A stretch of DNA of 64,000 bases from Saccostrea cucullata (GCF_032062105.1 NW_026932767.1:62001-126000); one strand, 5' to 3'. Positions 4,471 to 26,334 are shown, counted from the first letter of the stretch. Program-made: numbers and translations. The notes: generated by a model not told the origin, from the letters alone.

Positions 4471-5676
4471 TCATTTCCTTCTCCATAAAACATCATTTGG
4501 CCAAGAGAGTCTGTTGTTAAGAGGCAGAAGCTGCGTAGCTAAGGACGGTCTTGTTGGTTGAAATCCATGACGAGTTAAAAAGTCTATTATCTCCTGTCCG
4601 GCCGGGCCAGTTTTTAGCCACATCCACTCCATTAATACCGCTCTCACGTCGACTTTATTAAAAAAGTTTTCACCTCCTCTGAAAACTCTATTCTCGTAAC
4701 CTTCAACATCCATTTTTATTATCACTTTATTCAGATTAAAATCCGGAAGTTCAAGTATGTCGTCCAGAGTCGCTGTCTGTACGTTTCCGTAGTTACCTGA
4801 AACTCGACTTCCTCTCACTTTGTTTGGATTTTTATCTTTTGCTACAAAGGTTCCACCTATATTTCCTCTGTCTGCTCCAAGGGAAACTGTTTCGTGAACA
4901 TCTGAAAGAGCATTATATATCAACTGAACGTTCTCTGTAAAATTGTTTTGTTTCACAGTAGCACACAGCCTTTGGATATTCATTGCCAGTGCATCAACAG
5001 CAACCACTTTTCTACCAAATTTTGCAACGGCCATCGAATAAACTCCAATGTTGGCACCAAGATCTAAAAATTGTAACTTTGGATCCTGTCTAAGAAAGGT
5101 CAGAATGAGGTCAATGAAGCCTCCTTCCCAGGAGCCAAATTTAAGAACACTGTTACTAACATGAATGTCGTCTTTGGGGTTATGGATGAAAATCGGAACA
5201 GCCCCCGCCGAGGTTCTTAATGTTGCCTGCATGAACTTGGGGTAGTTTTTGCAGGTTCTCTCGTCTCTAGTCCATTGTTTTGCATTTCTAGCATACAGTC
5301 GAACAGATATGGGTCCAAATGTTGGTAAAACCTTAATCAATTTAGTTGTTTGTTGATAATTTAACACCGTTTTTCTTGTGACCTGTTTTTCTGAGGTAAT
5401 GCCGGTAGTATTTCTTCTTTCTTTCAATAGATTTCTGTTTTTGTGCACGTTTAAAATTCCCAACTTTAAATTTTTGTCTGGGATACTTGAATTTCCATTT
5501 AATTTCATTGACTCTGTATTACTGTTCCCTTTAAATATTCGAATCCCAGCATTCAATATTGTCTGGCCATGGTGTGAAATATTAATGTTAGTCTCTCTTC
5601 CAATGCCATATAGAAACCATCCTAGAGTGAAAGCACCCATCATGAGAAATACTGTCCAAATCTTATTTAGCTCCAT
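4471..5676 (-). CDS. FkbM (Methyltransf_21)-family SAM-dependent methyltransferase, type II membrane protein, paralog 1 (401 aa, single coding exon)
   Basis: Long ORF with an N-terminal hydrophobic anchor (IWTVFLMMGAFTLGWFLYGI) and an Asn/Thr-rich stem. Contains SAM motif I FLDLGANIGVYS and the FkbM signature IIKMDVEGYE. Clearly paralogous to the ORFs at 18065 and 25204. Confidence 0.9.
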   Translation of the reverse strand: MELNKIWTVFLMMGAFTLGWFLYGIGRETNINISHHGQTILNAGIRIFKGNSNTESMKLNGNSSIPDKNLKLGILNVHKNRNLLKERRNTTGITSEKQVTRKTVLNYQQTTKLIKVLPTFGPISVRLYARNAKQWTRDERTCKNYPKFMQATLRTSAGAVPIFIHNPKDDIHVSNSVLKFGSWEGGFIDLILTFLRQDPKLQFLDLGANIGVYSMAVAKFGRKVVAVDALAMNIQRLCATVKQNNFTENVQLIYNALSDVHETVSLGADRGNIGGTFVAKDKNPNKVRGSRVSGNYGNVQTATLDDILELPDFNLNKVIIKMDVEGYENRVFRGGENFFNKVDVRAVLMEWMWLKTGPAGQEIIDFLTRHGFQPTRPSLATQLLPLNNRLSWPNDVLWRRK

Positions 5677-7323
5677 GTTGAGTTAAACGTTTAAAATTTT
5701 CGGACTTCACAAGCAGAAACATTCCTTAGTCATTTAATTTTCGGTCCCACTTAATCCATTATAGTAATACCCACAAGTAACGATCAACCGTATTATTTAC
5801 ATAAATCATTCAACAAGGAAGGATTTCACACTGATTAGTACTAGTACTTACTTATTCAATAGTATTTAAGTAAAACAAGAACAGTATTTCCCCAAACTTC
5901 CTCAAATACATGGATATATACACGCATAAGTCACTTGAACTTTTTTCTTTGTTTCCTAGATTGTCCAGCTCATATCCTCAAGTGTTGAGCGCAAAGGTCA
6001 TTTTACTTGCTGAGTGTTACAAACATTTAAAATACTTTAAATGCGTATTGTTTGTGAACTCTGGATTTACCACCAGCTTCAAACAACGTTGACTCGTGTG
6101 TAAATAAGTGGTAAATATGGATTACTCAATTGTATTGACCAGTCTGCCTTTGTAAACCGAGTTCCAGCACGCCTTTCTGCTCGTGTCAATATCACAGAAA
6201 TTCGAATCTTAATTTTGTACACAATTCTATCTGACTCTCCGTTGTTGGAATGTTCTTTTGTTAATGCTCTTAATAGCTAATATTGATTTCAGACCTGTTT
6301 ATTACACATTTAAATATTCACTCCTCGTATCAAATGTATATAGATCCATAATTGATAAACAATAATGCAATTATCTACTGGGGACAGAACTAATTCCTGA
6401 GTATATATTCATATTCAGTAGTCTGTCGTGTTTCTCTGATTGTGATGCTTAGAAATGTTGTATATAGTTGAGGGAGAATACTACCAGGTATATCTAATGA
6501 TGAGTCTGATACATGCGACGAATAAAGTAGTGAAAACCATGATACCCTAGATGTATTTTTCCGTTTCAACAAGAATTCGTCGGTCACAAAATTATGATGA
6601 ATGCAGCATTTTAAGGATGTACAACACACCTACCCCAAAAAATTCCTGTCGTTTAATTTTCGTTATTTTTGTATATTTAGTACTTGACTATATCTACTGT
6701 ATGTATGCACATTTTGGACAAAATCGTTCGAGTGGTTTTTGGACAGGAACTTCCAAAAGTTACCCCCCTTTAGTTGTTTACAAGGAGAGAAAATTTTTAA
6801 TCAATGAACTACTTAAACCTTGATTTTCAAAAAAGCCAGGTTAGATATAAATGTCAAATTTTATTGGCTTATTCCTTTCACCATTTAACACAAAAACATA
6901 GTCATCTTTTTGATATACATATCATCAAAACAATTTTTAAAGACCTTAAACTGAAAAACTATGAATTTTCATAGCCTTGAAAATTGCGTATTTTTCAAAT
7001 TCAAAATTTTTTTGTGAAAAAACCTGTCGTTTAATTTTGGTAAAAAACTTTCTTTAGGTAGCTGGTAGTAAAAATAATCTTCATAATTTTTTGTATAATT
7101 TTTGTACGACCAGTTTTGATTTAATAGCGGAAAATTACCCCCTCCCCCTTTCTCAATAAATTTTACTTTGTTATATGAATCTACAAATACACATTAAAAA
7201 AATCAAATTGTAATATTGTTTTTGCTTCAAAAATATATTAATATTTTCTATATTCTAAATTTGCCATATCCGACGTCAGATGCAGGATTTTTTTTTATAA
7301 AAAGAATGCAAAGATTGCTTTAA

Positions 7324-7808
7324 GGTCAAGATCTAGTAAATGGAAGGTGCCTACAGATTTTTCAAATTTAAGAAATTAATTCCTTGAATGATGCTTTATA
7401 ACATTAGCTTGGTCAAAATATATGTTTCGGGGCATAATTTGTAGAAAAACAAAATGAAAAACCATATTTTAAACTGTCATTTTCAATGAAAAATTAAGAA
7501 AACCAGTATTGAAAATGGGAGTTGTTTCCATATCAGGCAAAGAAAATGTATCCAGATTGCCTACAGTTTTTCGGAAAATGGTAATATGTATGTTCTTAGT
7601 CTCTATTTTAAAATAATGTAAAATTTAAGATAGGTATCGGGACTACTTTTCATGTGATTTCAAATTGAATTCCATGGAAATACTTTATTTTCTACATAAT
7701 TCTATTAGAGCCGTAAAGTACGGGAAAAAGAAAGTTGAAAGTGATTATGACGTCATAATGGATTTAGCACTGAAAAGTTGTTCTAAAGTCATTTACTAGA
7801 TCTTGACC
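7324..7808. mobile_element. TTAA-target MITE (Kolobok-like, GG termini)
   Basis: TIR ggtcaagatctagtaaatg / catttactagatcttgacc, flanked by TTAA at 7320-7323 and 7809-7812. Confidence 0.85.
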
Positions 7809-24800: not shown

Positions 24801-25203
24801 AGCTAACCATTAAAGTATTTTTCTAATAAAATATCCAAATATGGAACAGATATGTCGAGACTCTGTGGTATCTTCTATTTCAACCTCTCTGGAATAAATC
24901 GTGTCGACATGTGAACAGAATGGAAATAACTATTGCTATAAATAATACGTCGTCGATATATCTACATGTCTAGTTCAAGGATACAGTAAGTGTTTTCCTC
25001 TCATATATTTTTTGTTTAAGTTCTGCTTCATGTGTCTATTAAAATGCGGCGCAACTGGTGCCCATGGGGATTCCAACAGAAGAAGCAGAATATTTTCCAA
25101 TGATAGCGGGCGATGGATCAAATACGAACGAAAACAGATATAGCGATAGGTCGTCTGAGTGAATCAGATAAACTTAATTATTATTTTTTAAAGGACATAT
25201 ATG

Positions 25204-26334
25204 TTAAATCATTTTTTTATTAGTCTTTTTCCTCCATAAAATATCTGCGGGCCATTTCGCACGGTCGTGAATCGGAAGTGGTGATGGCATCCTATTAGGT
25301 ATGTGGGGTTCCATGTTTTTCTTTAACATGAAGTTTATGATTTCTTCACCAGCACTTCCTGTTCTGAGCCAAAGCCACTCCATTAATATTGCCTGTACAT
25401 CCACTTTATTAAAAAATTCTTCACCTCCTTTGAAAACTTTATTTTCATAGCCCTCAACGTCAATTTTCATTATAACTTTCTTAAAGTCAAAATTTGGCAG
25501 AGACAAAATATCATCCAGTTTGATTGCTTGAACAGTACCGTAATTTCCCACAACTTGACTGCCTCTCACTTTATTTGAATTTTTATTCTTTGCTACAAAT
25601 GTCCCTCCTACATTGTTTTTATCTTTTCCAAGCGAAACGGTTTCGTGTACGTCCGAAAGGGCGTTGTATACGAGTTTAACCCTACTACTGAAATTACCTT
25701 CCATCACAGAAGAGCACAGCCTCTGAACGTTCATGTCGAGGGCGTCCACTGCTATCACACGCCTTCCCGCTAGCGCCGCCGCGAGAGTGAACACGCCTAC
25801 GTTGGCACCAATGTCAACGAATTGGATGTCTGGTTCACGTATTAACAAATCTATAATTAAATTTATATTATTTCCTTCCCAGCTGCCGTATTTAACCACA
25901 TTACCACTCACCCATATGTCAATTTTTGGATCATAAATATATATCGTAGTCGAGCCAGGAGGGACTCGCAATGTTGCTCGATAAAAACCACTAGTATTCC
26001 TTTTACACATACTGGACTGTACTTCCCATTTTGTTTGACTTCTACTGTACACTATTCCCGCCTCTTTGTCACTAATTAGTCCAACGTTTCGTTTGGTGGT
26101 TGAAACAGTACTCACAATCAATTGTTTTTTAATCAGATGACTTAATGTTGGCACATTATTTTTTAAGGTACTAGTAGTTAAATTATTATAAACGGATGTG
26201 TTGCGTATTAGTTGCAACTTCGAAATAGTTATATTCGCCATATCCAGTGCGTTTTTGTAAAATATGTACGTCAATATCCAACCAAGGCTGAAGCCTACCA
26301 AGATTAACATACAGGGCTTTTTGAATCGAGTCAT
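25204..26334 (-). CDS. FkbM-family methyltransferase, type II membrane protein, paralog 3 (~376 aa from ATG MTRFKK)
   Basis: TM segment LILVGFSLGWILTYIFY, motifs FVDIGANVGVFT and MKIDVEGYE. The ORF track starts at a TTG inside an intron; the true ATG follows the acceptor cttttcag|gagcATG. Confidence 0.88.
   Translation of the reverse strand: MTRFKKPCMLILVGFSLGWILTYIFYKNALDMANITISKLQLIRNTSVYNNLTTSTLKNNVPTLSHLIKKQLIVSTVSTTKRNVGLISDKEAGIVYSRSQTKWEVQSSMCKRNTSGFYRATLRVPPGSTTIYIYDPKIDIWVSGNVVKYGSWEGNNINLIIDLLIREPDIQFVDIGANVGVFTLAAALAGRRVIAVDALDMNVQRLCSSVMEGNFSSRVKLVYNALSDVHETVSLGKDKNNVGGTFVAKNKNSNKVRGSQVVGNYGTVQAIKLDDILSLPNFDFKKVIMKIDVEGYENKVFKGGEEFFNKVDVQAILMEWLWLRTGSAGEEIINFMLKKNMEPHIPNRMPSPLPIHDRAKWPADILWRKKTNKKMI

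Follow-up and report, generated by a model that had tools for sequence, protein, structure and literature searches.

In a stretch of 64,000 nucleotides from the oyster Saccostrea cucullata (GCF_032062105.1, NW_026932767.1:62001-126000), hereafter the window, three neighboring genes on the minus strand, here called A, B and C and together the trio, very probably encode intact, selectively maintained and membrane-anchored FkbM-family methyltransferases of the secretory pathway, as judged from sequence. That their acceptors are glycan sugars is in our estimate an evenly balanced proposition, to which the architecture of the proteins, the genomic setting of related genes in bacteria and a still unmet need of oysters for such enzymes lead on circumstantial grounds. 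More tentatively, and with somewhat less than even expectation, we may hypothesize that the anchored mollusc FkbM lineage, to which about nine other loci of this genome belong besides the trio, represents the long-sought animal glycan O-methyltransferases, in which the paralogs would set the specificity for 3-O-methyl-N-acetylgalactosamine (3-O-Me-GalNAc), for 3- versus 4-O-methylfucose (O-Me-Fuc) and for 3-/4-O-methylmannose (O-Me-Man), and which would come from a stock shared with bacterial polysaccharide O-methyltransferases and not from the Star-like lineage of animals.

An earlier note on this DNA had described three co-oriented paralogs between 4471 and 26334, and three co-oriented minus-strand open reading frames (ORFs) are indeed found there, each a single open frame, with pairwise identities of 48-54%. 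Their C-terminal 270 residues are nearly collinear in the alignment, and the N-terminal third is poorly aligned. The mechanical ORF of gene C extends to a TTG at 26358; the ATG at 26334 was adopted because the S. echinata ortholog (P0010) starts with the identical MTRFKK. The features of the three genes, in window coordinates, are as follows.

4471..5676, minus strand: coding sequence of gene A, 401 amino acids (aa) plus stop in one open frame, from the ORF listing
4558..5070, minus strand: FkbM/Methyltransf_21 domain of gene A, residues 203-373, matched by PF05050 and TIGR01444
5599..5661, minus strand: putative hydrophobic anchor of gene A, residues about 6-26, its sole 19-residue hydrophobic window (Kyte-Doolittle value, KD, 1.52), kept in orthologs
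18065..19084, minus strand: coding sequence of gene B, 339 aa plus stop in one open frame, from the ORF listing
18152..18664, minus strand: FkbM domain of gene B, residues 141-311 (TIGR01444 141-279, PF05050 193-311)
19004..19072, minus strand: putative anchor helix of gene B, residues 5-27, 19-residue KD up to 2.1, a helix in the AlphaFold2 model
19097..19110, minus strand: splice-acceptor-like pyrimidine tract and AG before gene B, 12 nucleotides upstream of the ATG, read from the sequence, with putative use as an acceptor
25204..26334, minus strand: coding sequence of gene C, 376 aa from the ATG plus stop in one open frame, from the ORF listing
25318..25821, minus strand: FkbM domain of gene C, matched by PF05050 and TIGR01444
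26254..26316, minus strand: putative anchor of gene C, residues about 7-27, 19-residue KD 1.95, preceded by the MTRFKK tail (+3)
26339..26355, minus strand: splice-acceptor-like pyrimidine tract and AG before gene C, 4 nucleotides upstream of the ATG, read from the sequence

The assignment of a C-terminal FkbM domain to each protein, for which the earlier note had proposed a profile check, is well supported. PF05050 (Methyltransf_21) is matched by A, B and C with 62, 50 and 47 bits (E 9e-17, 5e-13 and 6e-12), above the curated cut-off of 22.7 bits, and TIGR01444 (fkbM_fam) with 73, 59 and 65 bits, above its cut-off of 37.7 bits, and the S-adenosylmethionine (SAM)-binding and signature motifs are intact in all three. 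Among 24-28 mollusc and bacterial sequences, F203, D205, G207 and G211 (A numbering) of motif I, F-x-D-x-G-x-N-x-G, are invariant, as are K321, D323, V324, E325 and E328 of K-x-D-V-E-G-Y-E and a further glutamate downstream of it; the acidic residue after strand 2 (V-A-V-D/E) is also kept, as D in oysters and as E in mussels and bacteria. The AlphaFold2 model of B, with a mean predicted local distance difference test (pLDDT) score of 87 and a predicted template modelling (pTM) score of 0.79, displays a class I Rossmann-like methyltransferase fold, and the fold searches (Foldseek against the PDB and a wide VIA-align search) matched it to 2py6, the one solved FkbM-family structure, with Z 12.6 and a root-mean-square deviation of 3.1 over 165 residues. 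Among predicted viral structures its best matches are giant-virus and phage proteins annotated as FkbM (E 9e-15 to 1e-9), some of which also carry a fused polysaccharide-synthesis or glycosyltransferase domain. A sequence search of the PDB returned marginal matches only, in which arginine methyltransferases aligned around motif I, at E 0.02 or weaker.

A Kyte-Doolittle scan found one strongly hydrophobic 19-residue window per protein, at residues about 5-27, and none elsewhere, in agreement with the single transmembrane helix previously attributed to each paralog; in the model of B this segment is helical and is followed by a disordered stretch (residues 33-56, pLDDT <50) and then by a confident globular domain. 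The resulting order of a single N-terminal signal-anchor-like segment, a stem and a C-terminal catalytic domain is that of the type II glycan-modifying enzymes of the Golgi. The N-terminal tail, described earlier as short and basic in all three proteins, is so in B (+2) and C (+3), while in A (MELNK) it is net neutral. Given their basic tails, the positive-inside rule predicts a lumenal C-terminus for B and C, and it is from this rule that a lumenal orientation of the catalytic domain may be proposed. All the stem sequons listed in the earlier note are present (N32 NIS, N62 NSS and N89 NTT in A; N77 NIT in B; N34 NIT, N45 NTS and N51 NLT in C), together with N33 NLS in B, N113 NTS in C and an NF[TS] sequon within the catalytic domain common to the three proteins, but in a stem rich in N, S and T sequons would by themselves constitute weak evidence. 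A conserved, mollusc-specific pair of cysteines may be taken as a faintly suggestive hint on topology.

The window is AT-rich, with a GC content of about 0.30-0.39, and the trio (about 35%) does not differ from the oyster DNA that surrounds it. The best database matches are RefSeq entries of Saccostrea echinata named 'uncharacterized protein LOC...': A and its ortholog (P0006) share 91% identity with 100% of the length covered, and B is 92% identical to LOC133171633 at full length. Weaker protein matches come from Ostrea edulis, Mytilus, Pecten, Haliotis and Patella, a phyletic range which, being derived from word-seeded searches, is a lower bound, and in S. echinata and O. edulis the orthologs are located on chromosome-scale scaffolds. 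In a quick maximum-likelihood tree, the sole source of the support values given here, A, B and C each fall in an orthogroup of their own (Shimodaira-Hasegawa-like approximate likelihood ratio test, SH-aLRT, 100), S. echinata being found in all three, O. edulis in those of A and C, and further unnamed sequences in each; the three orthogroups together form one oyster clade (SH-aLRT 94). According to this tree, the duplications that gave rise to the trio predate the separation of the oyster genera, and the copies have been retained since. Nei-Gojobori counts give proportions of nonsynonymous differences (pN) of 0.26-0.30 for the catalytic domain, against a saturated synonymous proportion (pS) of 0.72-0.78, and pN values of 0.51-0.65, nearly neutral, for the stem; these counts indicate that the catalytic domain is under purifying selection and that the stem is fast-evolving. 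The pyrimidine tract and AG that precede the ATG of B and C recur at the same place in the Logan contigs L025 and L026, which carry other members of the C orthogroup, and look like a candidate acceptor of an intron in the 5' untranslated region, in which case the entire coding sequence would lie in the last exon. A look-up of contigs with the exact protein sequence of B returned no record.

In order to place the trio within the FkbM family, a profile built solely from its mollusc relatives was used to score other FkbM proteins. Bacterial members scored 60-95 bits and protist members 94-222 bits (Ochromonas 94, a dinoflagellate 222), whereas Star-like proteins and other oyster subfamilies obtained -2 to 21 bits. 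By this measure, the trio is in a mollusc lineage far nearer to bacterial and protist FkbM proteins than to the Drosophila Star-like animal lineage, a placement which is the main addition to the account given in the earlier note. Either horizontal transfer or an old eukaryotic lineage retained patchily could be its origin. Two bacterial relatives were inspected and both lie within surface-polysaccharide gene clusters: the locus of a Flavobacterium relative contains GT2 and GT4 glycosyltransferases, Wzy_C, Bac_transf and NeuB, and the second contains GT2 and GT4 glycosyltransferases, a polysaccharide pyruvyl transferase and a sugar epimerase. The nearest relatives of the trio with an interpretable context are thus polysaccharide-modifying enzymes. 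In a feature search of the ESM Atlas the nearest clusters were from rotifers, diatoms and plants, and these are regarded as leads only. The FkbM set of this genome as a whole consists of two deep lineages, a Star-like type and the trio type, which stands near the FkbM proteins of bacteria and protists.

Drosophila Star, the one animal FkbM-domain protein that has been characterised, is a type II protein of the endoplasmic reticulum (ER) and Golgi with a lumenal domain, known as a cargo chaperone and not as an enzyme, which escorts EGF-type ligands out of the ER. The PANTHER family 'PROTEIN STAR' (PTHR34009) is mapped to Pfam Methyltransf_21 in a published table (PMC12403961). By this correspondence and its chaperone role, Star is the obvious case of the characterised non-glycan relative that the earlier note had named as a possible refutation, and a search with another FkbM ORF of this genome (L014) did retrieve brachiopod, annelid and insect proteins, some of them named 'protein Star' by NCBI. 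Orthology between Star and the trio was considered and rejected: BLASTP of B against a Star-named protein gave E 0.027 in the wrong register, identity in the multiple alignment is 16-21%, motif I of Star-like proteins reads E-x-G-A-x-D-G, and the trio-lineage profile gives these proteins the low scores reported above.

The background against which the trio is of interest is that molluscs carry O-methylated sugars, as the earlier note stated, and that oysters carry several regiospecific ones. Oyster N-glycans contain 3-O-Me-GalNAc, 3-O-Me-Fuc in Crassostrea gigas versus 4-O-Me-Fuc in Ostrea edulis, and both 3-O-Me-Man and 4-O-Me-Man, which led the authors to refer to 'an exquisitely specific methylation process' (PMC10301044). 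Such a pattern calls for several regiospecific enzymes. The statement that the responsible animal enzymes are not established agrees with two reviews on C. elegans, in which the glycan methyltransferases were not known in 2019 (PMC6422873) and 'remain to be identified' in 2023 (PMC7614267); likewise, phrase searches of the literature for glycan, fucose, mannose and galactose methyltransferases returned no paper in which an animal glycan methyltransferase is named. In C. elegans, defects in SAMT-1, a candidate Golgi SAM transporter, result in reduced glycan methylation (PMC6422873). SAMT-1 is an MFS_5 protein whose plant homologs localise to the Golgi, and MFSD5 is an MFS_5 protein of humans (bioRxiv 10.1101/2021.07.06.451061). 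The S. cucullata genome harbors an intact, intron-free MFS_5 ORF of 453 aa (275 bits; C22911:110773-111720; L023:890-2251, minus strand); since humans also have an MFS_5 protein, its presence is necessary and not discriminating. A second, multi-exon MFS_5 copy is found on contig C23494.

Based on these observations, we may hypothesize that A, B and C are paralogs which belong to the secretory pathway of the oyster and cross the membrane once, in a type II-like manner, and whose C-terminal domain would be a catalytically active, SAM-dependent FkbM methyltransferase. We infer that the genes are expressed and that their products reside in the Golgi, where the catalytic domain most likely faces the lumen, SAM would be imported by a transporter of the MFS_5/SAMT-1 type, and sugar hydroxyls would be O-methylated on N-glycans, O-glycans or glycolipids. 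The diverged acceptor specificity proposed in the earlier note is purely speculative; the paralogs could differ in sugar or in position specificity, and their three orthogroups have been kept separate since before the oyster genera split.

The proposed system may be compared with several known ones. Bacterial FkbM-family sugar O-methyltransferases, with which the uncharacterised Bacteroidota homologs P0070 and P0079 are grouped, have in common with the trio the Pfam family, motif I in the form F-[VI]-D-[IL]-G-A-N-x-G and K-x-D-V-E-G-Y-E, and the SAM-dependent O-methylation of sugar hydroxyls is the chemistry they would likely share; in contrast to the trio, these proteins are soluble, of about 250-300 aa and devoid of anchor and stem, with 21-31% identity to A, B and C. 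RfbT of V. cholerae acts on the perosamine of the O-antigen and rhizobial NoeI on the fucose of Nod factors, and both are likened to the trio by family and function and not by direct sequence comparison. Star and the Star-like metazoan proteins of PTHR34009, to whose lineage the larger oyster FkbM set (L014, for instance) belongs, have the same Pfam family as the trio but form a deeply separate lineage with a different motif I. Plant GXM/DUF579 enzymes, which are Golgi polysaccharide O-methyltransferases, are type II anchored. Their methyltransferase families are not related to that of the trio and they act on the polysaccharides of the cell wall, but they resemble the proposed trio in that, with GoSAMT, they need SAM supplied by an MFS_5 transporter homologous to SAMT-1 (bioRxiv 10.1101/2021.07.06.451061). 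Finally, for the eukaryotic FkbM gene ostta19g00560 of Ostreococcus tauri, glycan methylation had been proposed from its neighborhood of sugar-modifying genes alone (PMC5082852); this gene is algal and not animal, its role is likewise a proposal, and it is likened to the trio by description and not by sequence. It is the only earlier link between a eukaryotic FkbM gene and glycan methylation found in the literature searched.

The reading of the trio as glycan O-methyltransferases gains from the family, the type II-like architecture, the motifs, purifying selection, the eukaryotic gene features, the distance from Star and the polysaccharide-cluster relatives, but the trio is not special, being one of several tandem clusters. 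In fact, with at least 53 FkbM matches in this genome and DUF268-type candidates in bivalves, nothing singles it out, and other observations also weigh against this reading. Class I methyltransferases tie broadly with 2py6, at Z 12-13, in the fold search of the B model; the fold confirms the family and is uninformative on the acceptor. The model of V. cholerae RfbT (PF05575) is matched only by C, at 16 bits, below its cut-off of 27.9. The neutral tail of A allows no prediction from charge and leaves its orientation ambiguous, and a cleaved signal peptide or secretion is a possible alternative to the anchor. The ortholog Logan contigs L001, L025 and L026 retain the pyrimidine tract before the ATG and look genomic, and are for that reason uninformative on transcription. 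Moreover, Star-named, PF05050-positive proteins with an FkbM domain are found in insects, which to our knowledge lack methylated glycans, so that this domain does not imply glycan methylation; nor is the family confined to sugars, as FkbM itself methylates a macrolide hydroxyl. Active, secretory-pathway or secreted FkbM methyltransferases could accordingly act on small metabolites, polyketide-like or lipid molecules, or protein side chains, for instance of mucus or shell matrix. This alternative, which we consider rather unlikely though deserving of attention, would be in keeping with the chemistry of FkbM proper, with a fold that holds no clue to substrate specificity and with the sub-threshold RfbT match; a bivalve FkbM-domain transcript among Vibrio-responsive host immune factors (PMC9125321) fits defence chemistry and a glycan role alike. 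It is less easily reconciled with the bacterial relatives inspected, which lie in polysaccharide and not in natural-product clusters, with an anchor and stem that are the standard build of Golgi glycan-modifying enzymes, and with the several sugar O-methyltransferases that oysters require, none of which has been identified.

The remaining alternatives would deprive the trio of catalytic activity or of function altogether. The correspondence between PTHR34009 and Methyltransf_21, and the PF05050-positive insect proteins named after Star, could suggest that A, B and C lack catalytic activity and act as type II cargo chaperones in the manner of Star, but the wrong-register BLASTP match, the low identity and profile scores of -2 to 21 bits where bacterial and protist proteins reach 60-222, together with a SAM-binding motif I and a D-V-E-G-x-E that are invariant and under purifying selection, render this quite improbable. 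Likewise, intron-free, single-frame coding sequences whose closest non-mollusc relatives are bacterial and protist might be expected of unexpressed relics of a bacterial transfer or of contaminant DNA. Against this stand a GC content equal to that of the surroundings, splice-acceptor-like sites right before the ATGs of B and C, eukaryote-type anchors not present in the bacterial relatives, orthologs on chromosome-scale scaffolds, nonsynonymous divergence far below synonymous divergence, and three orthogroups retained across oyster genera; contamination or dead transferred DNA is, consequently, very unlikely.

In molluscs, nematodes and planarians, O-methylated glycan sugars serve as recognition targets for innate-immune lectins, the tectonins among them, and in oysters such sugars decorate the histo-blood-group-like epitopes considered in norovirus binding (PMC10301044). 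The candidate genes are short and intron-free, so that the enzyme question can be put directly to the test by expression and assay; the split between bacterial-like and Star-like proteins shows which candidates to test first, and the role of the Star-like expansion in oysters becomes a question in itself.

The trio is one cluster amid a large expansion of type II-like FkbM genes. When the whole assembly was searched in six frames with B, 21 matches were obtained, about a dozen of them in long open frames, and the PF05050 model gave at least 53, most in open frames of 300-860 aa and with several tandem clusters, although this is not a gene count, some haplotig duplication being likely in an assembly of 23,869 contigs. 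Of the 19 FkbM ORFs sampled, 18 have a type II-like start, in which a hydrophobic stretch of about 19 residues comes after a short basic tail. Matches are located on contigs C10722, C12684, C13683, C5847, C19197 and C21725 (loci L005-L022 and L024). Three ORFs, L006 (C21891, 570 aa), L009 (C12684, 568 aa) and L010 (C12684, 853 aa), carry two to three tandem FkbM domains in one frame behind a single N-terminal anchor, and counterpart proteins of 555-578 aa occur in other oysters (P0137-P0152). PF03269 (DUF268), a Caenorhabditis domain which in C. elegans is part of gene clusters with a putative role in glycosylation, is combined with PF05050 in Mytilus and metagenome proteins (P0156, P0158, P0198 and P0202). 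On the contig and strand of the trio, about 45 kb before the start of the window (C14904:16449-16892), lies a broken FkbM fragment, which shares 60% identity with the C-terminal third of B and has six stop codons within the match to the Pfam model.

Other features of the window lie between and beyond the three genes. A 147-bp tandem repeat of 5.3 copies with 78% matches, at 21274-22051 between B and C, explains a repetitive ORF at 21289-21660. Tandem repeats of 21 and 43 bp, at 8460-8671 and 9021-9285, are built on the palindrome GGCGGCCGCC. At 57029-57508, on the minus strand, an exon-like ORF with a multicopper oxidase Cu-oxidase_3 domain (E 6e-35) is probably part of a laccase-like gene.

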